64,000 nucleotides of DNA from Nageia nagi (lineage: Eukaryota; Plantae; Pinophyta): the NCBI GenBank assembly GCA_050084985.1, contig JBITNC010000001.1, positions 173,414,001 through 173,478,000 on the forward strand. Reading direction: 5' to 3'. Position 1 is the stretch's first letter. Every line of letters starts with the position of its first letter. The translations under genes were made by a program, and so were the position numbers. Below are positions 1 to 50,220 of the stretch, one piece after another. The notes under the pieces are model-generated. The model was given only the letters and a program-made list of their open reading frames with translations, had not been told where the DNA came from and did not search any database.

Positions 1-1500
1 GCCAAAGGAGAAACAATAGGTTTGATAAATCCTTTAGCCAATAGATCTTCAATTTGATGTTTAATTTCTTCATTTTGAGTCATTGAATTGTAGTACAATG
101 ATGCCTTAGGAAGAGAAACACTTGGAAATAAATCAATTGTGTAGTTGATTGATTGATCTAGAGGAAGTGTTGATTGTGTCTCAAAAACATTTGCTTAAGA
201 TTTTAGAAACTTATTAATTTTTACATTTGGAGTGGATAGTGTAATGTTTGTCTTGGATTGTGAAGAATGTGGTCTAATGAAGATAAGAGCTAATTCAATT
301 GCATTATTTGTTTCCTTACAAGCCTACTTTCATGTGAGGACCGTATTTGTTTGCTTAATGGGAGAAGAAGTGCAAATGTGTGTATCCATGGAGAAGAACC
401 ACTATCCTTCTACTCAAGTTAATACAAATGAGGATAAGGTTGTACAGGTACCTTCAGTTTGTCAACAATGGACCTCACAATTAGATTCTCCTACGAGCCA
501 TTATCAATGATACAATCTAGAGAATAGTCATGTGTGAGATGTGTGATAGTGACAAACAAATTGCCATTATCTTCTGTAGTAGGATGATGATGCATCAAGG
601 TAAGTTTGTTAAAGTGTCCACACAATTCATCATATGATTTATCTTCTCTTGTGGTCTCCATGAGGGCATCTTGTGCTCCTTCATAGGTCGATTTTACAAA
701 CAAAATCGTCTTTTTCAATTTAAAATATTTGGACTTCTTGTGCGCTTTCTTCTTACAATAGTGACAAAGCTTACTATTTTTGGCTGAGGAAGAAGAAGAC
801 CCATGAGATTGTCCAATCGAAGAAGATTGTGAATGTTTGGAAATAGAAGTGCACTTACCTGAAGAAGTTGCAAGACAAGGAGGTGCTTTGGAAGTAAGGT
901 ACTTATCCTCGACCAACTAAACATGATTGTAATCTATTGCAAGAGTATTCAACTCTAGGAACTTTAACTCACTAAAAATATGGCCCACCAAGCTGCTTTT
1001 GAACTTGAGAATAAGCTCAGTTTTTTGATCTAAGTGACCCTACAATATTCACAAACATTTAAATTGAGCAATATAATCCTGAACTAATTGATTAAAACCT
1101 TGACGATGTTGAAGCCACTTAATACTAAGGTCTTGCAAGTGATGGGAGGGATAGAAAGTTTTGCCCAATACATCAACAAAATTGCTCTGAGGAAATGGAG
1201 GATTGAGGTTGACTTGTCAAAGCTGGAATTCTAGGCTTAGAAGAAGAAGAATGTTCGAGAACCACCATTTCTGCGACTCTCAAAAGCTTTAACTTGGCAT
1301 AAGCCACTTTGTTGGTCTCAAGGGTTTGATTGAACATGAACTATGTTTTCATGTCCATTACCTAGTTTGCAAGCACTTTGGTATTTCAAACATCATTATA
1401 GATCGACACTTCACATTTGGTGCATCATGTTTGGCGGCCAAGTCAGCAACAACATCAGAAAGTTCAATTACCTTCTTGACAAGGCTTGTGTGTAGTCACC
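1..1500 (-). mobile_element. Degenerate Ty3/Gypsy LTR retrotransposon fragment (gag, zinc knuckle, protease, start of RT), continuing off the left edge
   Basis: ORF 491..916 has a decayed CCHC knuckle (CHYCKKKAH) and a protease-like LDCIIDNGS. The reverse strand of 1-110 reads EEIKHQIEDLLAKGFIKPIVSPFG, typical of the Gypsy RT N-terminus. Possible decayed Met-tRNA PBS (GTTTTGATACC on +) at ~1773-1783. Confidence 0.75.
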
Positions 1501-4116
1501 ATCGTATTCAATTTAACAGATACTCCAAATTCCAAAACTCAAATCCTCTATAAAATATTACAATTTTAAAAAATTGCAATACTAAAATAAGTTAATATTT
1601 AATTTATAAACTTATTATGGCTGATTTTTAGCTGAATTAACCTGATAAAACTCAAAGCAAAGTATAGCATGCAACCAGCAATCCAATGGTTTTGACGGCA
1701 CACCAATCCGAGACCAGATAAACAAGTTTTAGCCCAAAGTGTGATAGGTATTTAAAAAGGCAAAATAGATACGTTTTGATACCTTTGATTTTTAAATGCT
1801 AATAGGTATTTTTCTCAGCAATGAGTGCAAACCAAGAAGAGATGAGTTTCAGCAGCCATGAAAATGTGATGAATAATTCTTCAGCAGTTGGCACCTTTTA
1901 TGGGATACTGAATTGCGCTACTGGAATTCCATGCTCTCTGTTCCTGAACTTTGCTCTACTGGAGAAAGTGGAGTGCGCTTAGCCAAGGCACTGTGCGTAT
2001 GTGTTGACAGAGTCAAAACAACTTCATGTTAGAATGATGATGTTGGCCTGTAGGAGAAAGGGGCGTTGTGTGCATATGGTGGAGATTTTTCTCCCAAAGC
2101 TGTGTGTGCGTACTTAGCTAGAAAATGATCAGCGTTGTTGCTAGGAGTACATGCGCCAGAAACACACATGCCAGAAGGAAGTGGACTGACAAAACAACCT
2201 TGTATTCATTGTGGCGAAGTCGATGCAGTAGGGTGTTTGTATTGTGCAGCCGAAGGTTGAGTGCTGGCAAAAGGAAAACAAAACATTACAGCTGAAAACC
2301 CTTGGATTGGGCACTAGTTGAGGCTGGAAGAAATTTGTTGTTGGCATGCCTCAATGCATTTGCAGTTGGACGGAAAACAACTGCAGGTCGAGGCAATAAA
2401 ACAGGGAGTTTGTTTGCAGTTGTGCTAACATCTAATTTAGGTTTTGGCAACTCCTCCTCTTGGAATGGTTAGCAAAAACCACAGCAGAAACTACAACAAT
2501 GGGAATAAGAGCATGGTGCATTGGACAGACTAATATTGTACTGTCATCATCAGACAGGAAGAATGGCATTTGTCAATGCCATACATGCTTCTAAACCAGA
2601 CAAATGGCTGAAGAAAGCTTATACAACCCAAACCAGAGAATTGGAAATGCAACTCTATTCCTCAGATTGGAACCATTTCTTTCATACCAGTGATGTAGAA
2701 TCCAAAATCTGATTGCTGGGACAAAAAATTTACAAGCGTAAGTAACCCAAGAGAACAACTCAAAAATCGAAACCTGAGATAACAAACCTAACAGTCCTGA
2801 GCTAACAACTTGAGCAGAGATAAAAAACTAACAATAAGACAAGAATATCAATCCTCATCAGAATTGTAATTCTGGATATACTTCTTATGTGTGATAATTT
2901 TTTTTTTTTCTTTTTTAATATTTATATAGCATGCCAAGTTTTAGGGCTTCAAGGTGGGGCAGTCTTTTAGATGCCTTTGCTCCGACTGCATTAATATGCA
3001 ATATGTTAAATAAATTATTATAAAAGGGCATAATTATTTCAAAATTAAATAGGCACAATCTTATACTCAACAGTAAACTATATACAAATAGATAATTCAT
3101 TTTATGGCATTAGAGCCACTTGGATCAGCTTTAACTTTTTACAAAATCGCATCAGAGACAAATGGATCCTAAAACCAGAATGAATACGTGGAGTGCAATT
3201 TCCTACACACTGCAGCTCCCAAAGACGGATCTTTCCATTCGATGTAGCAGCACACTTGAATCTTGTGATGCTGTTAGAGAAGAAGCTAGAAAACTAAGGG
3301 TACTTGTTTCCAGCTAACTCTGTGCAAGACAAATTACTGTATTATGGTCTAAACTTATAAGGAAAGAGAAATTGTGTGCCAGTTGCATACAAGAATTACT
3401 TTTTATCAGGGCCTATGCAATTTGTAGAAATGAAATATGAAGATGGAATCATTGTGCATTATAAATTTATATGTATTTGTTAGCCATTAGACATATAGGG
3501 CAAGAATTTGAGGAATAACATTCGAGAGAGATAGAGCTGGAACACATGGTTTGCTTTTTCCGCCATCTCTTATTGGTTTGAGTTCATTGGTCTTCTTGGA
3601 TTTCATGTGTGGAAGGTGCAAGATGTCATCATTGACAGAAGCAGCTGTTGGGGTTGTGGTTTTCAAGAATATGAATGAATGACGGTGATGGTGAGGTACG
3701 TGTCTTCTGATTGAGGCCATTAAGAGCTGGCATTAACATATTCAGAATGCTGTAAAAGTAAGCATTGTCATGTTTATGCTAATCAAAGGAAAATTGCATA
3801 TTGAATTCTTTGCGAGAAATGACTGTTATTTATAATGGTTTTAATGATTGGTACCATTTTTATGATGACTCAAAATACGAGTTATGTACTTGATAGACCT
3901 GGGTTTTGTATAACGTGTTTCTAAATGCATAATTATTAACAATTGATTATACAACCGAATTTTTAAAGAATTTTAATCTTCTCTTTATGGATAACAACAA
4001 TATTATATATTCAGGGTCAAGGAACTGATTAATTGCAATCTCATATTGATGGATCAGATCATTTTGTGATGTGTATGGGGGAGTTTCTCCTTGTTATCAG
4101 AAAGAAGAGTTGCATA

Positions 4117-7100
4117 CATAGTAGTAAATCTCGGACTCGGCTCGGACTCGCCGAGGCCCACTCGGACTCGAGACTCGGGACTCGGCAAAAAAATCGGCCA
4201 GACTCGGCAAAAACTCGGCAAAAGAAAAAATAAAAAAAATATGTATTTTTTCACTGAAAACATAAGTTTTTTCAATTGCATATTACTTATTATTGTTATT
4301 AGTGTCTTCTAGAAGCCTACTTACTCAACATCAACATTATACAATTTACAATATACACAATTACGAATAAGAAAAAACGAATAGGAAGGGGCATATGTTT
4401 ATATTCATCAAAATGTTAAAACTTCAAAGTTCACAATACAAAATGTGCCTATGGGGCTAAGATGGCTACAAAATACAAAAGCACACAATCTAATATCTAA
4501 TTCTATGATGGCTGAAAACTTCAATTTTTTGTCATCCTTTTCCCCTTTGCCCTAGCATAAGATACAAGTTCCTTTTGTGCCTGAGCTACGGAACTAGATG
4601 GCACTTCCCCTTCTTGTACCCTTTGCTCTTCTTGCCCCTTTGCTGCCAACTCCTCAGCTAGAATTTCAAGATCATCAAAGACAATGTTAGGAATATTAGG
4701 ATGTTGTAAAGGTTGATCCTCATCATCTGAAGACTCATCCACATCCCCTGAAGGCTGACCCTGATCCTGTAAAGGCTGATCCTGATCCTGTAAAGGCTGA
4801 TCGTCTACGATCCATTCACTGGATGGATCAATGGCATCAAGCTCAATGGCCTCATAATCTATACCTGCAATGTTTGCATAAAGTTCAATATCAATTTCTT
4901 AAATTTGTTTTCCAACTTAAAAGAGTTGTATATTTTATGAAATTGTAGATAATGGCCTCATAATCTAGATTCTATACCTGCAACTTTTTTATGGTGGAGG
5001 AGTAGATTGTAGTGAACAAACACAAGATCATTTAATTTTTCTTGTGTTAACCTGTTTCTCCTTTTGGAGTGAATGTGCTCAAAGATACTCCAATTACGCT
5101 CACAACCAGAAGCACTGCATGGTTGGGATAATACACGGATTGCAAAATTTTGTAGGTTGGGTGTAAATGACCCAAAATCCTCCCACCATAAGTCTGAAAA
5201 AATCCAATAAAAATAGATTTAATACACCACAAGTTCACATGTAAAAATTGAAACTAAGATTAAAAGATTAAAGTTTAATGTTTAATATTTAAATAACTTA
5301 CGTGGTAGCAAAGTATCAACTGCTTTGGCACATTCAGGGGAACTGAAAAGGATGCCGGTGGCACTTTTATATGCTTGCATCTCAGTTTGTATTGCTGAGC
5401 GAATGTTTGGATCAGCCACCAAACGGTCAATAGCAATCCTTAATCCTGACATCACCTCATAATCCTTACATTTTTTTCCAAACCAAAATTTGGGATTAAA
5501 ATAGTAAGCTGCTGCATGAAGAGAGCTATGAAGTTGGAATGTCCAACGACGATCAATGAGATCCCAAAGGGGTTGGTATTTGGCCTTATCGATGTTATAA
5601 TGTTTAGCAATAGCTTGTTTGGCCCTTTCCATGGCCTCAAACACATAACCCATAGGTGGTTTGTCTCCATCAACAAGACGAAGAACTGTCACCAAAGGCT
5701 CTACTATCTGGAAAAAAAAATATTTAAATTCAATATAAAGTTTAAAACTTTAAAGTTAAACAAAAAAATAAAATTAAAAGTTTAATCTTGTAAATTGTAC
5801 CTTGATGGCCTCCTCCATGGCCATCCAGAAGGGCTCCTCAAATAAGATGTCATAGACACTCTTCCATTCGGTGGTGCCTTTGAACCTAGCTCCAGCTTCC
5901 GTGAGCCACTCATCACCAACAAACATCTTCTTCATTGCCCCCTAGATATCAAATTTATGATTGAAGTTAGTTAATCTAATCACAAATCAAAAATTAAAAA
6001 TAAATAACAATTATCATGTGTATGATTATGTTACGATGAAGTTATCAACCTGTGCCTGGAAGAGACTCTGCAAAGTAATAAAAGTTGTGGCAAATCGTGT
6101 AATCCCAGGCCGTGCTATCTCCCTGCCATTAGTGTATTGCCTCATAAGATGCAACACCATGAATGATTGTAAACATATTTGACCACATGCTTTGCCTTCT
6201 CAACAATCGTGGCCAGCCAAGGTAATTTGCCAATGTCCTCCAGTAGCAAATCAAGACAATGGGCTGCACATGGGGTCCATACAAGTGTTTGGTATTTGCC
6301 CTCCAAAATCCTTCCTGCTCTCTTATAAGCTGAAGCATTATCCGTGATGATCTGGACAACATTTTCAGCTCCAACCTCATCCACTATGCTACCCAACAAG
6401 GCTGCAAGACGTACTCCATTCTTCACAATGCCAGATGCATCTACTGATCTCAAGAATACAATGCCTTCACATGAGGCAACCAAGAAATTGATCAATGTTC
6501 TACCCCTACCATCTTCCCAACCATCTGACATAATCGTGCACCCTGATGTGTGCCAACTCTCACGTTGCTTATGAAGCAACGTTTGAATGTCCTGCACAGC
6601 CTCGTCAAGGAGAGGACCCCTCAAATCATAATATGTGGGTGCCTTAAATCCTTGACCGCATGCTGCAATAGCCTCTACCATGCCCCGCCAATATGGAGAC
6701 CTAGCCACATTGAATGGGATGTCTGAAAAAACCAAAATGCAGCTATCGCCTTCCTGGCTTGCTTGTGTCTCTCCTCGTTCCATGCAGTCATACCATGCAA
6801 TGTGGGTTGTGACCCTGGACTGGAACGTGAAGCAAAAAAAGATCCGGGTTTTGCAATTGAGGCAATGCTAGAGCTATTGCCACCACTACCACTAGCAACT
6901 CCTCTGCTAGGAAATGGTGATGGCGTATATGTGCTACCTGTCTCTCCAAGGGGGTTTGCCATGGCCACATCATGTTTCCTTTTCAATTCCTTCTTCTCTT
7001 TATAACCAATGAGAGATGCATTGCACTCTTGCTGAACCTCTAGGGGAACTGTAGGGCATGGCTTAACTTCTTTCCCTACTATCCTGGCTAAGTGATACTT

Positions 7101-8048
7101 GAGGCGGTTTATGCCTCCACTCATATCAAAATTACAAAAGAGGCATATCACACCTCCTTTGTGTTTTGATTTTCCAGGATTCACATATTTCCATGCAGCA
7201 TCTTTCTTCCCTGGAGGTAATGTTGTGGGTATTGTTGGCTGCTCATGAGGTAGACTAGCCTCACTAGCCATGATCCTGCAGCTGCACAAGAAAAATAAAA
7301 AATAATAAGATACAAAAATTAAATTTAAATAGAAAAAATAAAAATATAAGCACATGCCACAAGCTAAAAAAAATGGCTTAAATCACAAATAAAAAATGGT
7401 ACTTAAAATTTTTGGCACCCGTCCAAGTATTAAATTTAGTCCCTTTACGGGGTTCCAAGGGGCAGCGCCCCTGGCGTGCCACCCCCGTCACGAGACGGGG
7501 CTTCAAATTTTTTCGAAAGGGTACAAACGGGCGTTCGGGAAGAGATCTGGGCTAAAAATTACACTATTCCAATTCGTTTGTATCTTACCCCTAAACCCCC
7601 TATTTTTACCTCGCGCAAATTAATTCCCTAAGTGTAATTTCCAAAGTTAAACTACTAATAATATTCGGCGAAAAAAAGAATATAGAAGGTAGAGAAATAA
7701 AATTACTTACCTCAAAATTTAGCACGGATAAAATTCGGTTGGTCTAGTTGCAAAATGCTTCTCTCCCTCTCTTTCGCCCTTCTTCTAACAACTGCACCGC
7801 CAAAATGACCAAAAAAGACTAGAAAAAGTAATAAAAGGCAGAAACTGGGCACTTTTTCTCAAACTGGGCACTTTTTCTCTTGCTGGTCGTGTCAGACGAG
7901 TTTTGGCGAGTCCGCGGCTAGAAACTCGCGAGTCTCGCCGGGACTCGGGACTCGCCAAGACTCGCCAAAACTCGCCGAGTCCGGCGAGTCCGAGCTGCCA
8001 AGACTCGGCCAGACAGACTCGGACTCGGGACTTGCGAGTTTTGGCAAC
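4117..8048 (-). mobile_element. hAT DNA transposon, left (inverted) copy, lacking ~23 bp of its 5' terminus
   Basis: Reverse complement of 8072-12004. 3' TIR CATAGTAGTAAATCTCG at 4117, GACTCGG subterminal repeats at both ends, and mirror-image ORFs in the ORF track (e.g. 5282..5695 vs 10426..10839). Confidence 0.95.
4521..7271 (-). pseudogene. hAT transposase, left copy; two 1-bp deletions in coding exon 1 (real or consensus errors)
   Basis: Same exons as the right copy, but A6 at 6726-6731 (vs T7 at 9388-9394) and C2 at 6157-6158 (vs G3 at 9962-9964) shift the frame and split the ORF into 6675..7355 and 6142..6783. Confidence 0.8.
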
Positions 8049-8230
8049 CATAGTAGCAAAACTCGCCGGGAATCGCCAAAACTCGCGAGTCCCGAGTCCG
8101 AGTCTGTCTGGCCGAGTCTTGGCAGCTCGGACTCGCCGGACTCGGCGAGTTTTGGCGAGTCTTGGCGAGTCCCGAGTCCCGGCGAGACTCGCGAGTTTCT
8201 AGCCGCGGACTCGCCAAAACTCGTCTGACA
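7890..8230. repeat. Fused 5' subterminal repeat arrays (GACTCGG/CCGAGT) at the palindrome centre
   Basis: Dense CpG-rich short motifs mirrored about ~8060; flanked by a 19-bp direct repeat AAACTGGGCACTTTTTCTC x2 (7842-7879, mirrored at 8241-8278). Confidence 0.9.
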
Positions 8231-11200
8231 CGACCAGCAAGAGAAAAAGTGCCCAGTTTGAGAAAAAGTGCCCAGTTTCTGCCTTTTATTACTTTTTCTA
8301 GTCTTTTTTGGTCATTTTGGCGGTGCAGTTGTTAGAAGAAGGGCGAAAGAGAGGGAGAGAAGCATTTTGCAACTAGACCAACCGAATTTTATCCGTGCTA
8401 AATTTTGAGGTAAGTAATTTTATTTCTCTACCTTCTATATTCTTTTTTTCGCCGAATATTATTAGTAGTTTAACTTTGGAAATTACACTTAGGGAATTAA
8501 TTTGCGCGAGGTAAAAATAGGGGTTTAGGGGTAAGATACAAACGAATTGGAATAGTGTAATTTTTAGCCCAGATCTCTTCCCGAACGCCCGTTTGTACCC
8601 TTTCGAAAAAATTTGAAGCCCCGTCTCGTGACGGGGGTGGCACGCCAGGGGCGCTGCCCCTTGGAACCCCGTAAAGGGACTAAATTTAATACTTGGACGG
8701 GTGCCAAAAATTTTAAGTACCATTTTTTATTTGTGATTTAAGCCATTTTTTTTAGCTTGTGGCATGTGCTTATATTTTTATTTTTTCTATTTAAATTTAA
8801 TTTTTGTATCTTATTATTTTTTATTTTTCTTGTGCAGCTGCAGGATCATGGCTAGTGAGGCTAGTCTACCTCATGAGCAGCCAACAATACCCACAACATT
8901 ACCTCCAGGGAAGAAAGATGCTGCATGGAAATATGTGAATCCTGGAAAATCAAAACACAAAGGAGGTGTGATATGCCTCTTTTGTAATTTTGATATGAGT
9001 GGAGGCATAAACCGCCTCAAGTATCACTTAGCCAGGATAGTAGGGAAAGAAGTTAAGCCATGCCCTACAGTTCCCCTAGAGGTTCAGCAAGAGTGCAATG
9101 CATCTCTCATTGGTTATAAAGAGAAGAAGGAATTGAAAAGGAAACATGATGTGGCCATGGCAAACCCCCTTGGAGAGACAGGTAGCACATATACGCCATC
9201 ACCATTTCCTAGCAGAGGAGTTGCTAGTGGTAGTGGTGGCAATAGCTCTAGCATTGCCTCAATTGCAAAACCCGGATCTTTTTTTGCTTCACGTTCCAGT
9301 CCAGGGTCACAACCCACATTGCATGGTATGACTGCATGGAACGAGGAGAGACACAAGCAAGCCAGGAAGGCGATAGCTGCATTTTGGTTTTTTTCAGACA
9401 TCCCATTCAATGTGGCTAGGTCTCCATATTGGCGGGGCATGGTAGAGGCTATTGCAGCATGCGGTCAAGGATTTAAGGCACCCACATATTATGATTTGAG
9501 GGGTCCTCTCCTTGACGAGGCTGTGCAGGACATTCAAACGTTGCTTCATAAGCAACGTGAGAGTTGGCACACATCAGGGTGCACGATTATGTCAGATGGT
9601 TGGGAAGATGGTAGGGGTAGAACATTGATCAATTTCTTGGTTGCCTCATGTGAAGGCATTGTATTCTTGAGATCAGTAGATGCATCTGGCATTGTGAAGA
9701 ATGGAGTACGTCTTGCAGCCTTGTTGGGTAGCATAGTGGATGAGGTTGGAGCTGAAAATGTTGTCCAGATCATCACGGATAATGCTTCAGCTTATAAGAG
9801 AGCAGGAAGGATTTTGGAGGGCAAATACCAAACACTTGTATGGACCCCATGTGCAGCCCATTGTCTTGATTTGCTACTGGAGGACATTGGCAAATTACCT
9901 TGGCTGGCCACGATTGTTGAGAAGGCAAAGCATGTGGTCAAATATGTTTACAATCATTCATGGGTGTTGCATCTTATGAGGCAATACACTAGTGGCAGGG
10001 AGATAGCACGGCCTGGGATTACACGATTTGCCACAACTTTTATTACTTTGCAGAGTCTCTTCCAGGCACAGGTTGATAACTTCATCGTAACATAATCATA
10101 CACATGATAATTGTTATTTATTTTTAATTTTTGATTTGTGATTAGATTAACTAACTTCAATCATAAATTTGATATCTAGGGGGCAATGAAGAAGATGTTT
10201 GTTGGTGATGAGTGGCTCACGGAAGCTGGAGCTAGGTTCAAAGGCACCACCGAATGGAAGAGTGTCTATGACATCTTATTTGAGGAGCCCTTCTGGATGG
10301 CCATGGAGGAGGCCATCAAGGTACAATTTACAAGATTAAACTTTTAATTTTATTTTTTTGTTTAACTTTAAAGTTTTAAACTTTATATTGAATTTAAATA
10401 TTTTTTTTTCCAGATAGTAGAGCCTTTGGTGACAGTTCTTCGTCTTGTTGATGGAGACAAACCACCTATGGGTTATGTGTTTGAGGCCATGGAAAGGGCC
10501 AAACAAGCTATTGCTAAACATTATAACATCGATAAGGCCAAATACCAACCCCTTTGGGATCTCATTGATCGTCGTTGGACATTCCAACTTCATAGCTCTC
10601 TTCATGCAGCAGCTTACTATTTTAATCCCAAATTTTGGTTTGGAAAAAAATGTAAGGATTATGAGGTGATGTCAGGATTAAGGATTGCTATTGACCGTTT
10701 GGTGGCTGATCCAAACATTCGCTCAGCAATACAAACTGAGATGCAAGCATATAAAAGTGCCACCGGCATCCTTTTCAGTTCCCCTGAATGTGCCAAAGCA
10801 GTTGATACTTTGCTACCACGTAAGTTATTTAAATATTAAACATTAAACTTTAATCTTTTAATCTTAGTTTCAATTTTTACATGTGAACTTGTGGTGTATT
10901 AAATCTATTTTTATTGGATTTTTTCAGACTTATGGTGGGAGGATTTTGGGTCATTTACACCCAACCTACAAAATTTTGCAATCCGTGTATTATCCCAACC
11001 ATGCAGTGCTTCTGGTTGTGAGCGTAATTGGAGTATCTTTGAGCACATTCACTCCAAAAGGAGAAACAGGTTAACACAAGAAAAATTAAATGATCTTGTG
11101 TTTGTTCACTACAATCTACTCCTCCACCATAAAAAAGTTGCAGGTATAGAATCTAGATTATGAGGCCATTATCTACAATTTCATAAAATATACAACTCTT

Positions 11201-12004
11201 TTAAGTTGGAAAACAAATTTAAGAAATTGATATTGAACTTTATGCAAACATTGCAGGTATAGATTATGAGGCCATTGAGCTTGATGCCATTGATCCATCC
11301 AGTGAATGGATCGTAGACGATCAGCCTTTACAGGATCAGGATCAGCCTTTACAGGATCAGGGTCAGCCTTCAGGGGATGTGGATGAGTCTTCAGATGATG
11401 AGGATCAACCTTTACAACATCCTAATATTCCTAACATTGTCTTTGATGATCTTGAAATTCTAGCTGAGGAGTTGGCAGCAAAGGGGCAAGAAGAGCAAAG
11501 GGTACAAGAAGGGGAAGTGCCATCTAGTTCCGTAGCTCAGGCACAAAAGGAACTTGTATCTTATGCTAGGGCAAAGGGGAAAAGGATGACAAAAAATTGA
11601 AGTTTTCAGCCATCATAGAATTAGATATTAGATTGTGTGCTTTTGTATTTTGTAGCCATCTTAGCCCCATAGGCACATTTTGTATTGTGAACTTTGAAGT
11701 TTTAACATTTTGATGAATATAAACATATGCCCCTTCCTATTCGTTTTTTCTTATTCGTAATTGTGTATATTGTAAATTGTATAATGTTGATGTTGAGTAA
11801 GTAGGCTTCTAGAAGACACTAATAACAATAATAAGTAATATGCAATTGAAAAAACTTATGTTTTCAGTGAAAAAATACATATTTTTTTTATTTTTTCTTT
11901 TGCCGAGTTTTTGCCGAGTCTGGCCGATTTTTTTGCCGAGTCCCGAGTCTCGAGTCCGAGTGGGCCTCGGCGAGTCCGAGCCGAGTCCGAGATTTACTAC
12001 TATG
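8049..12004 (+). mobile_element. Full-length, apparently autonomous hAT (Ac/Tam3-superfamily) transposon, 3956 bp
   Basis: Imperfect TIRs CATAGTAGCAAAACTCG (8049) and CGAGATTTACTACTATG (ending 12004), CpG-rich CCGAGT/GACTCGG subterminal arrays, internal spliced transposase. Confidence 0.95.
8848..11600 (+). CDS. hAT transposase, 776 aa (zf-BED, DUF659/RNase H-like core, hAT C-terminal dimerisation domain); exons 8848-10071, 10180-10320, 10414-10819, 10928-11143, 11257-11600
   Basis: All four introns are GT-AG and phase-compatible; joined length 2331 nt = 776 aa + stop. Motifs CLFC..RLKYHL (BED finger), MSDGW, ITDNA, CAAHCLDL, TRFAT, WWEDFG..SASGCERNWS..RRNRL..DLVFVHYN. Probable 5'UTR intron 8410-8837/8843. 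Confidence 0.92.
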
Positions 12005-12309
12005 TTTATGAGTGCTTTTTTCTCTGATTATTAAGTATCTACAACTTCGTATAGTCTTCTTGAATAGCTGTTAGGAGGAAAACGATTTATTAACTTTGAG
12101 GCTGCCCTTGAATGCAATGGGAAATGTAAAAGGGACCTTATATGAGCTGGTTGTTTCCGATACCAAAAGATAAAATGGTTATTTGTTGAAACCTTAAAGA
12201 AAAGTCTTGATGCATTCAGCTGCAGACAAGTTCATACATCATGCGGTTTGACGGTTCAATTTTGTTGTTAGTCCTGGTTGTAGAGACATGTAGTTATGAG
12301 ACATAGCAA

Positions 12310-12530
12310 TGTAATACAAAATCTTTAGATCATGTTAGGCATAATTGTTTGATGATGCGGGAGAGATGTTGTTAAATGCTTTCACAATTTGAATTTGAGC
12401 ACAACTTGTGTAGCTTATTGTAATAATATAAAATCTTCAGATCATGTTAGACATGATTTCTTGATGATTCATATGGAGCTGCTGTTATATGTTTTTACAC
12501 TTCGAATTTGAGAACTTATGTTGCTTAGTA
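12310..12530. repeat. Diverged ~113-bp tandem duplication
   Basis: AAAATCTT(T/C)AGATCATGTTAG...TGATGAT...GAATTTGAG occurs twice in succession. Confidence 0.7.
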
Positions 12531-13474
12531 ATTCTATGATTTGGTGATTGTTATAAATCATATTAAAGAATTATCTTGTATTTTGATCCAAGTCTACTTT
12601 TTGTACTTGTTTTTATTTTGTCTTTTAAAAAATCCTAAGGATTTATTCAAATATAATCTAGCCTAATTGAAGGCTTAATATCTAAACATTAGGTTGAATT
12701 GATGTTGACTTATGATAAGGTCACTGAAGATTGCCTTGTTGGTTATGTAACTTATGTTAAAAGCTATAATGAATGTTGATATCTAAGATGCATTATTAGC
12801 TTCTTGTCATACGAAGGTGGAAGTGTTGGTATAGATTGTTGATTAAATGGGAGAGTCATGTGCTTGTTACACTATAAGTTTAACCAAATTGAAGGGGAGT
12901 GTTAAAACGGTTAGTATGCAATATGGTAAACAAATTACTACGAAACAGCATGATTATTTATAGACACAATCCTAGAATGTATCTAAATAGAAGTCATTTT
13001 AGCGGAACAGTGAGTATATCTTAACTTCAACAGCCATGATATTGAATGCCCAATCAAGAACACAAGGACAATAGCTCAAGTTCAGAAGAAATTAAACATG
13101 GCTGCATGCCTTGGACTTCATTGAATACTAAGTAGATCTCAAGAGTTGACTTGGCTCTGGGAAAATTTCTTGTCATATGCTCAATAACTAGAAATGCAAA
13201 AATATAATCAATTTTTTTGAATAATGCTCGTCTTTTTAATACTTGCCAAGTATTTCCAGTTTAAACAAGTTCTGCTGATTTTGTGTTAATTTTTTTGGCA
13301 GTTCATTTTCTTTAAAATAAAAAATCTAGTTTACTGACACATTTAATTGCCAATTTTGCTATCTGTTTATCTATATATATATATATCTGTGTGCGCACAT
13401 CTTTTAACACTCTCCAAGCATTTTCAGCTTAGACGAGTCTGTGTTGAGTTTGTATTTTTTCACCCTTCTGTTCG

Positions 13475-19809: not shown

Positions 19810-22622
19810 TTATTTGGTCTCATAATGAAAGGTTTTCTGAATATAGTATAACATGTAGCCTTGAGAAGCCCTAACCACTTCCTCACTGACTTGATTTATC
19901 CATGCATCATCGCATTTATACCATTTTCCACCTGATCTCAAGAAAGCAACATAATGACCTGAATCCATATTTCCAGAATGAGTCACTACAGCGAAAAGAT
20001 CAAATTTAGATGACATTTTTTCAGAAACTGCCGGTATCTCATCATCATTCTCTACAGACAAAGTTCTATTGCCATATCTCAATCTAACAATGGACGAAGA
20101 CATATATGGAGTCATATCCAAACTGAAAGGAAATTGCATGTAGCGATCAACCTTCTTTGTGGTTTGCTGGGTAGTTGAGTGCTCGAATCTCTTGATATGA
20201 AAAGACAACACCAATGGCAACTTCTTTACAGACATCTGTTTAATGGATTCTTGTTGTCTCTTACAATGTATACAATAGATTTTTTCATTCGAGCCAAGTC
20301 TCTCAGGCCTCGTGAACTTATCTAAACAACCGAGAAGAGTTGACATTCCAGTCACACGGCCTTTGTGGAACAGGTCACCTCTTAAATTGGCACAATCTGA
20401 ATCCGGAGGAATTTTTTTCCGTACAATGCTTCGTTCCAAATCCAAGGATAGATCCAAGCAAGGGTCATAAGTAGTTGAAGTGGAGTTGCAGATGGTACAT
20501 GTAACATCTGATCTAAGAACTCCTGAGAAGACTTTGTGAACAATGCATCTACATTGTGCGCTACCTGCATTGCTGCAATTAGAGATGTGTCAGTTTCTCA
20601 ATTATAGTAGGATGGTATTTTTTTAATTAAATAATAATTTTTATTGAAACGGATATGCAAAACTGGACAAAGAAATGATCTTCAATTAGAGAAAATCAAA
20701 TGATGATATAAATACAGGGGATGAAAGAAGTTAGAAAATGCTGATTACTAAGAAGGTGCTGCATCCATATACCCGTGGAGCAATCAATTTATTATTTATA
20801 GACCAGTGTAGGACACAACTTGCAAGAAAAAAAACACATGTCAAAACGGCATGAAGAAGGTCAAGAAATTTGGGGAATTTAGAGGATCTATGTATGTGGC
20901 ATGAAGGTGGTCAAGAAATGGCCTATAGCCTGACGAATTGATTTTATTGATTGAGCATTCTCTTTAAACATTGTGGCACCACTTCCAATTCGTGATGACC
21001 GGGGCAACTACTCCTATGCTACTTGAACTGCAGATTGCTTTATGACAATGCACCTTCCTTGAAAATCCCTGTCAAGAATGACCTGATGGTGGCCGTATTC
21101 GGTGGTTTAGTTGAACTGCTATTGGGGGATACTATTTAGGGAAATACATGCACTGCCAAAGAAAGAATGAAATAAATTTCGTATATAGAGGATTACAAAG
21201 AAGGAATGAGGGAGCCTTTATCTATATCATTATTTATATCCTTTTCGGTAAATACGGTATATTTTTAACACTTGTCATCAATAATCATGCGTAATGAAAA
21301 CAGGAAACAAGCAGCTGGTTTTACAAGTCTCAACTTTTTTTATTCTTCTTGTTTTAAAACAATTAAAGGTGGATGGAGATGCAAAGCTAATTGAGGTTTG
21401 CATAAGCAATAAGGAAACTTCACCATTGTGACTGTATGCCCTTAGTCGAAGCTGTTGCATGGTTGGCATGAATTCCATCAACGGCAGAAATAAAGAAGTC
21501 GTGTGCATCATGCTGCTCGTACCCTGCAAAATTCCCCGCATGTTGCCACCAACTGCATTGAGGATAACATCATTCATGTTACGAAACACGCATTTCAACA
21601 AACATTCTGCAAGGGGGTCTCTTTCATAATAACAACATTCATACAAATTTCAACAAACATTCTGCAAGGGGGTCTCTTTCATAACAACAATATTAATAAA
21701 GCACTAAACATCAATAATATCTAATCTAGTTTTGGTTAACTGCATACCTGTAAAGAAACCGTGCAGGGCTATAGGGACTCCGAGCCCCAGAAAAGGAGGC
21801 CGAGAATATATCATCCATATCGCAACTTATGCACCCATTATGCTGCTGACAAAATGCACGGTTATGACGATCACTGAGGAAATAATTTCTCAGAGGAGGA
21901 GTGTGCAGAAGGGCCTGCAGCACGCAATTCATGAAGCACGTATTGCCCAAATTATTCAACCCCCTTAATCCCCAAGGCCGAAAATCCTCATCACTCCCAC
22001 TCTCTCGACAAGTCAATCTTGTGGCCCTTTGCCGAATAAGACTCTTCTCTGCATTACTTGGCACCCAAGACCTATATTCAACAATTCTCCTCCTCTTTTT
22101 GCATCCCCATTTCAGTCCATTCAACCCACTGTTAACGATTTCTCCATCCCTCTCGCCGCCCATTTGCTCTCTTTTTAGCATACTATTGTTTTTGTCATCA
22201 TGATGCTGTGGAGTTGGAGCTATTGCTCTTTTGGTGGAGCAGAGAACCAGTGTGTCAAAATCAGGGTCGTAGACCTGGTCATTGCAGGCACCGCAGTAAA
22301 GCTCTGCTCTGTCCAAATCCACAGAGATGTTATGAGATGGTTTCCTGTTGTGGCTATGGAGATGGGCATTGCAGTGGATGTCTGCACAGATGAGACATGC
22401 ATATAATCTTCTTTTTCCACTGGTTTTACCGCATGCGATGCAGGTGGGCACTTGTTGTATTGTTTCATCCTTTCCTGATGTTACGCTCCATGAGAATCCT
22501 GACTGCAACGACAGGCATTTCTGCACAACTCTGAAGCCCCTGAGACCCTGTCTCGATTTGTAGTCCAGGAGGTGCTGGCATGCCCTGTAGGCTTCTTCTC
22601 TGCTCTTCTTCTTCTTCAACAT
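19810..22622 (-). CDS. UBP22: Ubiquitin carboxyl-terminal hydrolase 22-like (USP22/Ubp8 family, SAGA deubiquitination module), ~588 aa; exons 22622-21748, 21552-21424, 20572-19810
   Basis: N-terminal zf-UBP (CIAC..LYACLIC..H..ISVDLDRAELYCGACNDQVYD), Cys box GLNNLGNTCFMN, SWWQH..GYEQHDAHDFF, FSGVLRSDVTC, His box HSGNMDSGHY..WYKCDD. A GT-AG model gives 1767 nt in frame. The exon 2/3 junction and start codon are less certain. Confidence 0.9.
21592..21693. repeat. 55-bp tandem duplication in UBP22 intron 1
   Basis: ATTTCAACAAACATTCTGCAAGGGGGTCTCTTTCATAA twice. Confidence 0.9.
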
Positions 22623-25555
22623 TCTTTCTTCTTGATCCTTGTCCCGAATGGCCTCCCTCCAAAGAGGCACGTAATGAGGGAATGATATTTTTCTCCTGTT
22701 GCTAGACTGAGATGTGAAAGGGGGCGCTAAAGCAAAGGGAAATACCACTACTCTCCTGTATACATTTTCACCTTCTCAGATTTCGTTTGTTTACAATCCA
22801 GTTTGAAGTCCGAGACGATCGATAATTTGGCCGTATAATTGTATTGATTATCGAAAATTGGGAACGGTGAGCGATGCTCATGCAAGAAACTTTTTTTTGA
22901 CAGATTGACGACACGGAAGGACCATTAAGAGGACGCCACTATATTCAAACATAGGAGTGAGATTGGTTGGTGTTAATGGGTTGTTTTAAATCAGTGTTCC
23001 TTATGTTGAGGTCTTATTAATAGGGTTGCAATTTAACAGAATTCATAAAACACCTCCAATGATTTTCAAAGGACAAAGATTACCATAATGTTTTCTAGAT
23101 AAAATCATTATGACATTTATCCTTGTGTCAACATTTTAGTATTATTTTTTTTATAATTTTTGTATTTCAATCATTGAATTTACCATCCTTGTTTGGTATC
23201 TCTTTTATGTTTATAATGATCATAGTATATTTCGTTCATTAACTTGGTTGGTTTTATTATGTGTTACATTTTTGGTGAATTTTAATTTGTTTTATGTTTT
23301 CTATATATTTTTAATTGAAAATTTTAAATTTGTAAATTTTTAGATAATTTATCTAAATGCATGAAAGAGTTAAAGTTCTTATTCTTATTACAAGAAGTGC
23401 TAGGTTAAATGTTAAAATAGAATCTTATAATAATTTTAAATTCAACCATGTTGATGGTGATTATGATTTGTTTTGCATCATAAGATAATAATGAGCGAAA
23501 TAATTTTTTTCGAATGATAATGAAGAAATTAACCCATAATTTGATATTCAAGTTGTCCATAATCAAGATCTCCATAATAATTTCAATAAATGCCTTTTGC
23601 AACATTCACGATTTATGAATCTTTTTTTTATTCCTTAACAAGGATGTCTTTTTTCATTTATTATTTGAAATTTAATATTAATGTCCATGGGTGATACAAA
23701 ATTATCAATATGATTACAAAAAAAAATACATATAAATAAGAGCAAGGGATTGCCTAATGTAACTCCAACGAGTAAGTGAGAAGTAAGCACAAAAGAGTAT
23801 CAAAATACAACTAGTTTGAGCAGGGTAGAAAGCCTTCATATGGAGAATTAAGGGGCTCCATCATCATCTGAGGTTAGAAAGAAGCTTCAAATGTTATAAC
23901 CAGAGGAAGTAACCAAATGTTTAGTGATACTATACTAACAAGTAATCCTTCCAGAGTCTTCAAGGTTCATGTGATGCTTTTGATTTGTAGCTTCTTGTGA
24001 TTGAAAATAGAATGTGATAAGTTTGGAACTCGTTGTGTCGGGGGATTTATCAATGATCACTTTTTGTCTGAGGTAGGTGGTTTCTTGGATATAGTGTAAC
24101 ACATATATGGTCTTTGTAATTTATACATGATTTCAACATGTGTGTGCTTCTAAATAAATAATGGAATTGACCTTGAGTTTCATAGTAGATGGGGCAAATG
24201 AATATGAAATACTTTTGTCTTTGGTTGCATATACGTTGATCTATAGGGATATGGTGGTTTGTCTTAATACGAAGTTTGTGTGAAAAAATCCTTATCTAGC
24301 CAAAGGGGAAATAGAGATCATGAGATATGTGGATGTAATCAAGGATGATAATAGCTCCATTCTCTAGTTTCATGTCAACTTAAAGATAATGCAAGAGCTT
24401 TGGTGAAAACGTTCTTTCCACTTTCACCAAATGATGTATAATTGAAATCGCTCCTATGCATCTCAAACTATCTCTTTTATCCCTTCTAATTCAATTCCTA
24501 TGTCTCAAATTATTATTAACAAAATCATTAATTACACTCCTAAATCCTATTTGACCTTTCTTTATCTACCCTTATTTATAGTAATTACACACTAGTAATA
24601 CATGTCCTTAGTTCTTTCCCCTTCATCCACTCTTATTTGATATTCTTTACCTCAATCAAGAAATATTATAGCAAGTCTTGGAAACATTATAACAATTTTT
24701 GCCCTTCCATTTTTTTGGAATTGTATATTTGTTAACCACCAAAAACCTACTTCGTTTTTAAATTGTATTATTTGCCCTTATGTTATTTATTTACCTATTA
24801 CTAGATCTAAGATAATTCTCTTTCTTAAATCTCAAAAATTCAAAACTTTTTGAGATGATGACCTTCCTTCAATAGATGTAAATTCATCCTTAATTATCTT
24901 ATCCCTTCTGAAGTTTCAAAACTTCAAACCTTTACAAGTAAAGAAGATCAACACATCAAATTTGACAATTTAAGGAATTATATAATAAAATTGCCAAAAG
25001 ATTTTTGAAAAGCCTAAAAGGTTAACACTCTTGAGTGGTTATATAAATCATCAAAAAATCATATTTTCACCTCTTTTTTTCTCCTTTGTAGACATCCTTG
25101 TGGATCATTTCAAGATTAACATTACTAAAATGATAATATTTCAAAATTAAGGTTACCTCCCTCTCAGTTCTTAGAGAGGACCTCTAATCTTTCTACTAGA
25201 GATAACAACAAAAGGATCAAGAAGGAAATCTACTCAACTTACTTGAAAACAAAATGGATTGAATTGAAAAAACCACTTTCATCGAAGCTCTTGCATTATT
25301 TTTAGGTTTACATGAAACCAAAGAATGATGCTATTGCCATCCTTGATTACATCAAGCTACACATATCTCATGGATTCTATTTCCCCTTGGCAAGATAAAG
25401 GTTTACATATACCAACTTTCTATCGAGATAAACCATTATACCCATAGAGATTAGTGTATATGCAAATTGTATAGCATGTAACTAAATATTGAAGAGTATT
25501 TCATATTTATTTATCCCATTTCCTATGTGTAAACACCCTAAAATTGCATTTTACA

Positions 25556-39100: not shown

Positions 39101-42100
39101 TTCAATCCAACTGAGATAAATATGGTCTAGGGTATCATGGACCTAAGATTAAACTTATAGAAGAATAATTTTTCCATCTTAATATTCTAGAAGAGGAGGT
39201 ATCGTACAATGATGAGCATGATATCAATTTGTATTTTTGTCCATCTAGTCCTCATGCTTCGAAGTGTTCCATATCAAACAATTTCTTCCACAAGCTTTCA
39301 TATGACCTCATATTTGATGTTTCGATGATTTTCCTTGATGGTTTATCACTTTTCATCCCTCTCTTGGATTGTAACTTGCAAAATTCTATCAGTCCTTTAT
39401 TTACAGATTTCTCTTCTCATTTGTTGGGTCCTTCTCTTATTTCAGGTGATGCATCTCTTTCTTTTAATTACCCTGACGAAGCTGAATCATTAATCTTTGC
39501 TTATTTCATCTATATTTTGGACAAATATGATTATGCATACCTTCCCATCTTTAAGCAGTTAGAGGATGGATCCCACATGCACATAGGAAAGTTAATTGAA
39601 GTAAATATTAGTGAAGATCCCATAGATCCAAAGATAGTCTATTTGGGGAATGTTTTAGATGAAGCAAAAAGGGATAAAGCCACATAAATACTAAAATGGT
39701 ACACTAAGATATTTTCCTTTAGATATCAAGATATGCCTAGCATGGACCCTAATGTCATAGTCCATAATATTGTCACTCGTCAAAATGCCAAGCTCGTTAA
39801 GTAGAAACCTAGGAGGGTCAATCCATCACTATCACTTCAAATTAAGGATGAGATTTAGAAGCTTTTAGATGCCAAGTTCATTACTTATATTGATTATCCC
39901 TAGTGGATGTCTAATATGGTTCCCATCGATAATCTTAAGGGTCATATTAGGGTTTGTACAAATTTTAGAGATCTCAATGTGGTTGGCCCTAATGATGACT
40001 TCCCATTGCCTAACATCGACACTTTGGTTAAAAACATAATGAGATATAAGATGTTGTCACTCATGTATGGATTCTTAGGTTATAATTAGATTTGGGTTTC
40101 CCCCCAAGACCAACACAAGACAAAATTCACTATGCTATGGGGGAATTTTTGTTATAAGGTCACAACATTTGGACTAATTATGACTTATGTATTCTATGAT
40201 ATGATGCATGAAATCATGGAGGACTATGTAGAAAATTTGTTGGCTAAGTCTAGAACCAAAGATCAACATTGGGAAGTGCTAGAAGAGTCTTTGAGAGATT
40301 GCTTAAACATAACATCAAATTAAATCCTAAGAAATGTGTTTTTAGTGTTACATCCAGCAAACTCCTAGGGTTCATCATTTCTAAAAGAGGTATAAAGGTT
40401 GATCTTAATAAAGTTACTGCCATCACAAGCATGCCTCCTTTTCATGATATCAAAACCTTAAGAAGTCTTCAAGGTAAGATCTAGGCTATTTGAAGATTCA
40501 TAGCTTAATTATCAGATAAGTGTAGACTATTTAATGAACTCCTTAAGAAGGGCATATAGTTCAATTAAAATAAGAGTTTTCAATGAGCTTTCAATGAAAT
40601 CAAGCAATACTTACTTAACCCTCTAGTGTTTATTCCTCCTAAGGATAATTCCCCCTTCTATTTATATCTTTTAGCTACTGATTTTGCACTAGGAGTCATG
40701 TTAGCCCAAAAGAATGAGCAAGGAAAGGAGAAGGCTATCTATTACCTTAGTCACATACTTGTGGACTATGAGCTTAGATGTGTTTACATTGAGAAGGTAT
40801 ACCTCATCCTCATCTTTATTGGTAAGAAACTTTGGCATTACATGTTAAATCACACCACATATATGATTTCTAGAGCCAATCCATTGAAACATATGATGAG
40901 AAATGCGTATCACAATACATGCACTACCAAATTGATCATGTTTCTTTCAGAATTTGACTTAATGCTTATCAACCATAATTTAGTCAAAGTTTAGGTCATA
41001 GTAGATCAGTTAGTAGAGGCAACCATCCAAGCTACTACCCCTCTTGAGATCACCCTCCTTGATGAGGATGTGTTCAACATTGATGAGATTGAGGAAGTAG
41101 TAAATACCCAATAGGACTATGATATTACTATGTATTTGATGGGTAAATATGTGAACAAGGGGAAGGGGATAGATTTATCTTCTTCACTCCCTAGGGGTTC
41201 CCTATCATGTATTCTTTCAAACTTGACTTTCTATGTACGAATAATAATGCAAAATATGAGGCATTGATCTTGGGCCTTAAGATAACCATCGAGCTAAAAT
41301 TTGAAAGATCGCTCATTTATGGAGACTCTAAATTAATTTTCAATCAAATTATGGTTAGCTATCAATGTCACAATGAGCTTCTAAAGACTTATCAAGATAT
41401 GGCACTGATATTGCTAAAATGGTTCAAAGCCTATAAAATTGGGACAACCCCCCAATCATCTAATAGGTTTACTGACACCATGGCATATTTAGGATCACTT
41501 ATCCCTCCCAATCCTCATAAACATATTCAACATGTAGAGATAATGATTGGAAATAATTGATACTTAAGGCATCACTACCTCAAGGTCTACCCTCAACCTC
41601 AGTTAATGAGATTACTATTGAATTACATGACATGTCGTACAAGTAACTACATGAGTATTTGAAGTGGAATGTCACACCTCCTAACTTATCAGCAGGTGAA
41701 AAATGGATGTTAAGATAAAATGCTTCCCATTACACCATATTAGGAGATATTTTCTATAAACAATCATAGATGGAGTCCTCCTACATTATTTAGAGCTTTA
41801 TGATGAGGCTATTGCTATGCAAACTTGTCATGACAACATATATGGTGGGCACTTTAATGGAACTGCTATTGCCAAATATATTCTTAGAATGGGATATTAT
41901 TGGCCTACCATAGAATGAGACTATCAAGAATATGTCAAAAAGTATGTTAAGTGTCAACAAAATTCTCATTTGCAACATCTACCTGCTCAAGCACTTAACT
42001 CTATCCAATCTATGTGGCCTTTGGCATAGTGGGGATTTGATCCTATAGGGTAGTTTGTACCTCCCTCTTCAGGTGGCCATAAGTTCACTATCATTGCGAT

Positions 42101-42210
42101 AGAATATTTCACTAAGTGGGTCAAGTTTGAGCCACTTGTTTCTACCATGGGTCTTAAGATGGCCAACTTCATTGACACTCATATTATTTGTAGGTTTGGT
42201 ATTTCATAGC
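33190..42210 (+). mobile_element. Degenerate Ty3/Gypsy retrotransposon of the Tat/Ogre lineage (gag, protease, RT, RNase H, additional archaeal-type RNase H, truncated integrase); 5' boundary approximate
   Basis: Gag FPNKFEILKIDKFKG; protease RVLVDNGS; G-patch-like GYGLGK (~39050); RT WMSNMVP..IRVCTNFRDLN..DDFPLPNID and KLNPKKCVF; RH FALGVMLAQ; aRH CTNNNAKYEALILGL; integrase HDNIYGGHF, GYYWPT, EYFTKWV. Confidence 0.9.
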
Positions 42211-42538
42211 ACATCCCTATTTCTAGACATTACCGTAAAGACCATCAGTAGGGTTTGCATGTCCTCCCAAAGTGCCCCAACTTGACTCTTTGTTGTAATC
42301 CTTGCAGCTTGCTCTATTACCACCTAACATTGTAGGATGTTGGCTAGCCCCTCCATTGCTACCCTAGCTACTTGCTTTATCATCCTGGCTACCTACTCTA
42401 CTACTAGCTGAGCCTATGTCACATCTAGTTGTGCTTAGAGAGCATTTCACTATCCTTGGTATTGGGTGGACCTCTCATCAATGAAGGTCCCCAATCCTAG
42501 CTCTAGGAGCTCTTGAGATCTCCACTTAGGGTTTAAAA

Positions 42539-48500: not shown

Positions 48501-50220
48501 TTAAAAACTTTGTTGTGCACACTTTGAAAGTTTCTTATGGTAGTGAAGTTGTCTTCAAGGGTGAGTGAAGGTTGAATTTATGTTTGTGACAACAAATTCA
48601 TCCTTAGGAGGCTATTTTTGTTGTATATTGTTGATCTAAATGTACACCTTCATGGTTAGTTCGCTCTATGTGAGGAACTCATGGTACATTTTATTTTTTG
48701 TTATCACTATGTGAGAAATCAATATGTGTTTGTTGGCACTATTTTGTTATACATATGTGAGTAACTCATATGTGTATATAATTTTTTTATTATTGATCAA
48801 CACATGTTTCTAATATACAGTAGATGACTATGAGTATTGCTTTGACATCTTCGTGATGATTTATAGTGCATCATTAATCAATTTATGAAAGGTATTACTT
48901 AGTTCATTTATCATGTGATTGATATGAATATTTATATGATGCATCTAACTGATATTGTTTATGAGCTGCTTATAGCTTGCAGGTTTCATCGTAAAAATGC
49001 AGATTACTTACTTTGGGTGGGAAGGCTCATGGAGGCTCACATGTCAACATAGTGTTGATTGACTACACTTAGAGTAAAACCAATTATGGTTAATGATTGT
49101 ATTGTAAATAATTTTTTAAAATGGTATTGTAATGAGTCTCAAACTAAGATCTTGCTTATTTCTCAATGATATAAAAATTCTTACCTCCACTTGTATCTCT
49201 TTAGAGGAGAACTCTCTCTTACTCTATCTTTATTCTTCTCTCTATGCTCTATCCTAATATTACATTAAGAGGGAGTGTTAGAATTAATGCAATAATGTGT
49301 AATATTTCTCTTTAATATAAATTCAGTTAATACGTAAAGTATCATTAGATACCTTAAAGTATTAAGAGAATAAAAATAGGAGAAGGATTAAGAATAGGTA
49401 AAGGAACAAAAATAGAAAAGAGATTAATTATCGAGTGGGTTTCTTCTTTTAAAAAGAGAAGAATCTTCCGTTCTCAAGTTACACAAGTGTAATGCAAGCT
49501 TTGCTATAGGTTTAGAGTTTGATAGAGAGAAAAGATTTTGTAAAAGAGGTCCTTGAGAATAAGAATCTCTTAGTTAGTGTACTTACTCCCAAGAAGGTGT
49601 TGGAATGTATAATACATTATTGTAAATAGATGTATTAAATATTCTATGTAAATTCACTAATAGTTAAGGGTATTATTTGATACCTTAAGTATTTTAATGG
49701 ATATAATAATGTAACTTGTCCTACACTCCAAGTCATGAGCATGCCCTTTGGGTCAAAGGTGTGCATGTCATCCTTAGGTCATCCAAGGAGGGATTTTGGC
49801 CTATACATAGAAGGCTCACTCCTTGTAATGACATACCAATTGAGGAGTAAGGATATGCTATAGGATAGAAGTGTAAGAATTGAGATTAGAAAAATTGTAA
49901 GAGAGTTGTATTTATGAGATAAGTAAAGATCTAGTTAGTGGATGTACTCCTAGTTGGAGGAACCACTTTATATCTTGTGTTGTGAGATTGCTTTGTGTAT
50001 TTGTTAGATGTAATTATGAGCTTTCATGTGATCTTGGTAGTTTAAGAATTATATTATTAATATTAGTTCCTTTAGAAGGTATAAACTACTTTATATCTTG
50101 TGTTATTTATGAGATTAGATTGAGTTATTGTGCTATTGTGTTAATGTAGAAAGTGTCTTCTTGAGATCTTGGTAGAATAGAAGTTAATTCAGAAAGGGTT
50201 AATTACTGAATTAACTTTTA
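42539..50220 (+). mobile_element. Degenerate Ty1/Copia retrotransposon with two LTRs (42539-42984 and 49276-50220, the latter interrupted)
   Basis: TGTTA-starting LTRs share AAAGTATCATTAGATACCTTAAAGTATT and other blocks. Decayed PBS at 42985-42998, PPT TAAGAGGGAG at 49266-49275. WIVDSG protease, LWHHQLHH, KLDKRSKKCIFMGY, KYKARLVAKG, FYVDDLLI, YRKLIGSLLYLT. Confidence 0.92.
49598..50074 (+). mobile_element. Solo LTR (477 bp) of a related Copia family nested inside the 3' LTR
   Basis: Starts TGTTGG; flanked by the 5-bp direct repeat GAAGG (49593-49597 and 50075-50079); shares motifs with the host LTR (AAATTCAC..GATACCTTAA, GGAGGAACCACTTTATATCTT). Confidence 0.8.

Follow-up and report, generated by a model that had tools for sequence, protein, structure and literature searches.

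How an active DNA transposon first comes to be recognised for silencing is still an open question, and both proven triggers, Mu killer (Muk) and Ac killer (Ack) of maize, are accidents of laboratory stocks. A naturally occurring instance of what could become such a trigger lies in a 64,000-nt stretch of the Nageia nagi genome (contig JBITNC010000001.1, positions 173,414,001 to 173,478,000; hereafter the window, with coordinates counted from its first letter): a near-perfect inverted duplication of a still-coding hAT transposon, at 4117-12004, with a trace of its origin at the junction. At about even confidence, we read this locus as a real and very young inverted duplication of one copy of a multi-copy hAT family, created by an aberrant reaction of the element's own transposase, most likely sister-chromatid transposition. 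Sister-chromatid transposition of Ac yields inverted duplications (maize Ac literature), and the locus belongs to this known kind, the transposon inverted duplications that stem from aberrant hAT transposition; it is not a demonstrated new system.

The closest described relatives are the Ac killer alleles p1-ww-id1/Ack1 and p1-ww-id4, composites formed by sister-chromatid transposition and re-replication (bioRxiv 10.1101/2020.01.07.897926; PMC13635294). As in these alleles, the Nageia locus is an inverted repeat of a hAT element that contains the 5′ terminus, the promoter region and coding sequence in perfect or nearly perfect arms of kilobase length, and, if the proposed origin holds, was likewise created by aberrant sister-chromatid transposition of the element itself. 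The Ac killers differ in having partial, fractured arms (~1.8-3.9 kb) with random break points, 5′ ends and promoters on the outside pointing inward, and a perfect 8-bp duplication, whereas the Nageia arms are one whole and one near-whole copy with the 5′ ends inside, divergent promoters, one exact inner terminus and no target duplication. For Ack, double-stranded RNA (dsRNA), small interfering RNAs (siRNAs) and heritable silencing in trans have been shown; for the Nageia locus they would be a prediction by analogy. Muk resembles it as a natural inverted duplication of terminal repeat and transposase sequence whose hairpin requires read-through from outside, but belongs to the Mutator superfamily and consists of a partial mudrA duplication behind a host promoter known to transcribe it, a counterpart of which was not identified at the Nageia locus. 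In the sister-chromatid duplications of Ac/fAc pairs, as far as a later paper relates them (Zhang and Peterson 1999), the copies likewise lie in inverted orientation with their matching ends on the outside, and the stretch from donor to target is inverted and duplicated; there, the ends come from two separate elements and 0.3-3.2 Mb are duplicated. In the Nageia case as proposed, a single element would have supplied both ends, the duplicated host segment would have been near zero and is now deleted, and a bare transposon palindrome would be the outcome. The chromosome-breaking double Ds of maize consists of one Ds inside its inverted twin, with the host copy split around the insert. It shares with the Nageia locus two inverted copies of one hAT element at one site, in an arrangement of ends that favours aberrant transposition and breakage; the Nageia copies, however, abut end to end, with no split remainder after 12004.

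An inverted-repeat search of 3000-13000 returned four abutting blocks that together form one palindrome of 7,888 bp, the stretch 4117-12004. Global alignment of 4117-8048 against the reverse complement of 8049-12004, with which BLAST agrees, yielded 99.87% complementarity between a left arm of 3,929 nt (4117-8045) and a right arm of 3,930 nt (8075-12004). Two substitutions separate the arms (6129T/9992C and 8033T/8087C), along with three 1-nt indels: the left arm is one base short at 6157 (CC versus CCC) and at 6726 (A6 versus A7), and the right arm at ~8519-8523 (C4 versus C5). No other inverted repeat near 3.9 kb occurs in the 64-kb window, which excludes chance as the source of the palindrome; an Rfam search of the window returned no match. 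Both outer limits, 4117 and 12004, are exact element termini, and the flanks beyond them are unrelated to each other and to the rest of the window, bar one uninformative 49-nt AT-rich match lying ~1 kb outward on either side. The parts of the locus are as follows.

8049-12004, plus strand: right arm element, a complete hAT element of 3,956 bp with one private 1-nt deletion at ~8519-8523, in non-coding sequence.
4117-8045, minus strand: left arm, nucleotides 27-3956 of the element, without the 5′ terminal 26 nt that include the inverted end.
8046-8074, no strand: palindrome centre, 29 nt, asymmetric and unpaired, made of AAC and the right copy's first 26 nt; the would-be loop of a hairpin or cruciform.
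8044-8048, no strand: junction GCAAC, of which GC is common with the left arm sequence (microhomology) and AAC comes from neither arm; identical to the reverse complement of 4109-4113.
4109-4116, no strand: left outer 8-mer, GTTGCATA, without a direct repeat at 12005-12012 or 8041-8048.
12005-12012, no strand: right outer 8-mer, TTTATGAG, without a direct copy at 8041-8048 or 4109-4116.

This layout agrees in large part with the earlier note on this DNA, made from the letters. The near-perfect palindrome with ~3.93-kb arms, the three 1-bp indels and the unique outer flanks all hold, and the outer coordinates given there, 4117 and 12004, coincide exactly with element termini. Two substitutions rather than one distinguish the arms, and the separation, rightly described as short, measures 29 nt instead of ~25. 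The note had further placed the whole transposase gene and the subterminal arrays in each arm: both arms do carry arrays and transposase sequence, yet only the right one is full-length and coding, as the left lacks 26 nt of its inner end and is frameshifted twice in exon 1.

Independent assemblies bear on whether the two arms are real and how they are related. Most of the stretch is contained in 20 public runs from 14 studies, filed under several coded organism labels and including air metagenomes; these exist as contigs only. We compared the contigs of four runs over 6150-12149, three of which (X1, X2 and X9) share one organism label while X4 bears another. In every one of them, the right element is covered at high word depth by contigs that break off precisely at 8049 and 12004 and carry on into other flanks, which marks these two positions as genuine ends of a multi-copy family. 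At 8087, 9394, 9964 and 9992 the contigs have the state of the right arm, and at the 8519 indel that of the left arm; taking the contig states as ancestral, the left arm thus has four private changes and the right arm one. As each of the five differences is private to one arm, the arms are physically distinct copies. At 11667, in contrast, both arms have C (left mirror position 4454) where the contigs of all four runs have T, and this shared private variant identifies the arms as sister copies, each other's closest kin, rather than two arrivals from the family pool.

The same data speak to an assembly artefact, in which the copies would lie elsewhere, or only one would exist, and would have been joined by the assembler or by a chimeric fold-back long read. 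Palindromes and young repeats do assemble poorly, two of the three indels fall in homopolymers of 5 to 7 bases, where polishing errors are typical, and no contig of the four runs crosses the centre. A fold-back read, however, would leave a symmetric centre and inverted flanks, not an asymmetric centre that ends at a true terminus between unrelated flanks. In addition, the two substitutions and the CC/CCC indel, with the consensus state on opposite arms, point to two separate molecules as the source of the reads, and the sequence at the junction is a new one that overlapping repeat copies could not yield. We regard an artefact as improbable.

The target sites depart from those of an ordinary insertion. 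Comparison of GTTGCATA, TTTATGAG and TTGGCAAC, the 8-mer left of 8049, revealed no 8-bp direct repeat around either copy or the entire unit. Without a direct 8-mer pair, neither copy nor the unit occupies an ordinary hAT insertion site, and we attribute the missing duplication to the way in which the locus formed. An inverted match was found in its place: the reverse complement of 8041-8048 is GTTGCCAA, the first five nucleotides of which equal 4109-4113. If this is a remnant of the inverted left outer 8-mer beside the other copy's inner end, it retains 5 of the 8 nt, contiguous and adjacent to the terminus, in the only register that the model below permits; the site of its partner is deleted. 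Such a 5-nt match is expected by chance about once in 1,000 cases, or about once in 64 if only the 3 nt unexplained by the left arm are counted.

These features are what sister-chromatid transposition would leave. After replication, the 5′ end of the element on one chromatid would be paired with the 3′ end of its counterpart on the sister chromatid; both would be cut and joined to a target close by, upstream of the element's own 5′ end, whereby one copy and a short intervening stretch would become inverted. With T1 and T2 denoting the target sites, the predicted product reads flank, T1, inverted copy, inverted spacer, reverse complement of T1, copy, T2, flank, and is identical whichever copy was the original. 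Under this model the 3′ ends should both face outward, direct duplications should be lacking, and an inverted T1 should adjoin the 5′ terminus of the right copy on its left. Indeed, the like (3′) ends both point outward at the Nageia locus, the flanks are unrelated and a direct duplication is absent. The centre would later have suffered a deletion, sealed at the 2-nt microhomology GC, that took out the spacer together with 26 nt from the left copy's 5′ end and 3 nt from the inverted T1. Symmetry-breaking deletions at the centre are the usual fate of long palindromes.

A pair of ordinary events could have produced a similar structure: excision and nearby reinsertion in inverted orientation, followed by a transposase-triggered break at the right 5′ end that was resected and rejoined. 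The intervening DNA would have been lost along with the two inner target duplications and 26 nt from the left copy, AAC being filler. Local reinsertion and deletions by element ends are well-known hAT behaviour (Ac literature), and this route explains why target duplications are absent and why 8049 is an exact 5′ terminus; the private variant that both arms have at 11667 suits a parent and its daughter copy. The deletion would, however, need to halt no more than 3 nt from the terminus, and the 3 to 5 nt at the joint should be filler or the end of TTTATGAG. What stands there matches the reverse complement of the left outer 8-mer, which this sequence of events does not predict, and we consider this origin unlikely.

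Four other models were rejected. The palindrome did not move as a unit, since no 8-bp duplication encloses it. Nested insertion of one copy in the other, of the double-Ds type, is ruled out because the sequence following 12004 is unrelated to the element's 5′ end and the missing 26 nt are not there. Fold-back of the chromosome, or of a chimeric read, fails on flanks that are not inverse copies and on the asymmetric centre. Finally, an Ack-style re-replication composite predicts 5′ ends outward and a perfect target duplication; at the Nageia locus GTTGCATA and TTTATGAG differ, and one side of the junction is an exact terminus.

Several observations weigh against an origin by sister-chromatid transposition. 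The inverted target remnant is just 5 nt long and its counterpart on the other side is deleted, so that half of the signature is lost; moreover, the model needs the central deletion as an additional event. That this family makes target duplications of 8 bp is itself presumed, as no second copy with both flanks was present among the contigs and the metagenome scans found no member of the family. In the literature searched, we found no description of single-element sister-chromatid transposition giving a whole-element palindrome. The central joint, lastly, and with it the adjacency of the arms, comes from the assembly: among the four runs, no contig crosses the centre or covers the unique flank beyond 12004.

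The right copy has the following parts.

8049-8065, plus strand: 5′ terminal inverted repeat, CATAGTAGCAAAACTCG, matching the 3′ end at 15 of 17 positions; the contigs of four runs end at 8049.
8061-8215, no strand: 5′ subterminal array of GACTCG/CGAGTC motifs, presumed transposase binding region.
8848-10071, plus strand: transposase exon 1, 408 codons, open, with a strong DUF659 and a weak zf-BED match.
10180-10320, plus strand: transposase exon 2; the intron that follows, 10321-10413 (GT..AG), is precisely absent from one contig of run X1.
10414-10819, plus strand: transposase exon 3, open.
10928-11143, plus strand: transposase exon 4, hAT C-terminal dimerisation domain.
11257-11600, plus strand: predicted transposase exon 5, acidic tail, stop codon at 11598-11600.
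11903-11987, no strand: 3′ subterminal array of CCGAGT/CGAGTC motifs.
11988-12004, minus strand: 3′ terminal inverted repeat, inverted CATAGTAGTAAATCTCG, with the left-arm mirror copy at 4117-4133.

Reading of the splice sites gave a transposase model of five open exons and four GT..AG introns, encoding 776 codons plus stop. A full-length relative from Cryptomeria aligns along the right arm in a single frame, interrupted by three stop-filled gaps. The exons were searched one at a time. Exon 1 matched DUF659 with an E value of 8.6e-59, and its zf-BED match (18.2-19.5 bits) stayed under the cut-off of 20.6; exon 4 contains the hAT dimerisation domain PF05699 at 10930-11142 (E 3.4e-15, 56 bits versus a cut-off of 21.4). 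Together with the DUF659 core, the short inverted ends and the subterminal motif arrays, this domain places the element in the hAT superfamily, the BED finger being weak. The closest named relatives are BED/DUF659/hAT-dimerisation proteins of Cryptomeria, Pinus and Taxus, and since the best of them reach only 47-59% identity, the family itself is undescribed. GACTCG/CGAGTC motifs are confined to ~170 nt from the 5′ end and ~125 nt from the 3′ end. Both subterminal stretches are CpG-rich and the remaining element is CpG-poor, with a CpG observed/expected ratio of 1.2 in the 5′ array as against ~0.3 across the rest of the element. Judged by its sequence, the right copy possesses everything that an autonomous element needs and should be excisable today. 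Exon 5 also harbours a 21-nt tandem repeat of 4.7 copies (11319-11416, mirrored at 4705-4802), which codes for a reiterated acidic DQPLQDQ motif in the C-terminal tail.

The left copy is a defective twin.

4521-7271, minus strand: left transposase remnant, the mirror of 8848-11600, in which exon 1 is split into open reading frames 6675-7355 and 6142-6783 plus a third piece.

Its exon 1 is frameshifted by the 1-nt deletions at 6157 and 6726, and its private substitutions lie at 6129 and 8033. With its inner end missing and exon 1 broken, this copy is dead, neither mobile by itself nor coding.

Beyond the locus, the contigs offer a view of the family. The precise removal of 10321-10413 from a run X1 contig fits a spliced transcript, with the library type a guess. 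In another X1 contig, 9135 is fused to 11710 across the 6-nt filler TGTATA; this 2,574-bp internal deletion presumably marks a Ds-like, non-autonomous member of the family at another place in the genome. The two contigs suggest that this multi-copy family has been active recently. A metagenome scan for the 5′ terminus returned no matches, and one for relatives of exon 1 recovered only other hAT families at no more than 58% identity, not the family itself. Near-identical copies of the element were seen in runs under seven coded organism labels and in air metagenomes from two studies. The family is abundant in an organism with airborne pollen or spores, and either common to its close relatives or spread between them.

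The earlier note had proposed that the locus is a natural hAT killer: read-through would yield a 3.9-kb hairpin, Dicer-like enzymes would cut it into 21/22/24-nt siRNAs, and these would act in trans to silence the family, with transposase still supplied by the right copy. This role is compatible with any of the origins considered here. The palindrome spans terminal, promoter and coding sequence of the family, its 3.93-kb arms at 99.87% identity covering 5′ terminus, promoter and transposase gene as in Muk and Ack, loci that silence MuDR and Ac; the literature bears out the reality of both precedents, which the note had invoked. Folding also predicts the near-perfect duplex that the note expected of a transcript crossing the centre: a perfect stem closed by a loop of 29 nt, with -621 kcal/mol (z = -79) over the inner 601 nt. 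The substitution at 8033, a C-to-T change at a CpG in the left subterminal array, hints faintly at methylation. As for a central source of intact transposase, one copy, the right, can still encode it, and the 5′ promoter ends border the centre as the note had said.

The orientation of these promoters nonetheless counts against the killer role. With the 5′ ends meeting at the centre, the two promoters should fire outward and give sense RNAs that do not pair, so that the element's own promoters could not make the hairpin and only transcription by the host or another outside promoter is left as a route. In Ack-id4, by contrast, the retained Ac promoters converge and are thought to make dsRNA themselves, while in Ack1 and Muk the promoter of a host gene does so. 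No flanking promoter is evident at the Nageia locus, which is intergenic: the sole nearby gene pointing toward the palindrome, a UBP22-like gene on the right (22748 to 19810, minus strand), ends 7.8 kb away, and on the left there are only short open reading frames, a gag-like one among them pointing away. The family, moreover, is still high-copy, with the apparent spliced transcript in one run and deletion derivatives present, and none of the 20 runs is recorded as RNA. We therefore regard the locus as a candidate silencer by analogy with maize, and rate it as quite unlikely that it acts as one. The full scenario strikes us as a long shot: a single autonomous hAT copy, through one sister-chromatid transposition at its own doorstep, would have produced a whole-element palindrome that seeds family-wide hairpin siRNAs if low-level outside or RNA polymerase IV (Pol IV) transcription crosses it, a self-inflicted killer in a plant far from maize, no more than a few tens of thousands of years old and with its active parent copy attached. 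Should carriers and non-carriers exist in the species, they would allow a direct test of family silencing started by a palindrome and of the part played by promoter orientation.

The ends that remain at 4117 (3′) and 8049 (5′) have the same orientation, as in the Ac/fAc pair of alternative transposition in maize. By this analogy, the locus is plausibly a site of further deletions, inversions and breaks. It is likely fragile and prone to rearrangement; for now, it is a curiosity of structure, of a type already known.

The arms differ by two substitutions over 3,929 aligned bases, or 0.05%, which under usual plant rates would date the duplication to tens of thousands, perhaps a hundred thousand, years ago. 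The age would be lower if the indels are polishing errors and greater if gene conversion has removed differences between the arms. Elsewhere in the window, direct repeats of ~2 kb (40924-42978 and 49298-50760) lie 9.3 kb apart and are probably the long terminal repeats (LTRs) of an old retrotransposon at 40.9-51 kb. As these are merely 86-90% alike, the palindrome is far younger than its surroundings.

Other features of the window lie apart from the palindrome. The gene to its right, at 19810-22748 on the minus strand, encodes a UBP22-type deubiquitinase (zf-UBP and UCH) with a first long exon at 21726-22748 and a last coding exon at 19810-20457; within the length range searched, its best named matches, from Diphasiastrum and Marchantia, reach only 48% identity. 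To the left, a 141-aa open reading frame at 491-916 (minus strand) carries a zinc-knuckle-like motif, CHYCKKKAHKK, and has no Pfam match; it is probably a decayed retrotransposon gag. At the far end, a degenerate array of plant-type telomere repeats (TTTAGGG variants, ~770 bp, 62764-63535) adjoins ~1 kb of a 16/32-nt satellite, AAATTAGGGTTGTAAA, at 61727-62767, and the telomere-type array accounts for a spike of GC skew in the window's last 2 kb.

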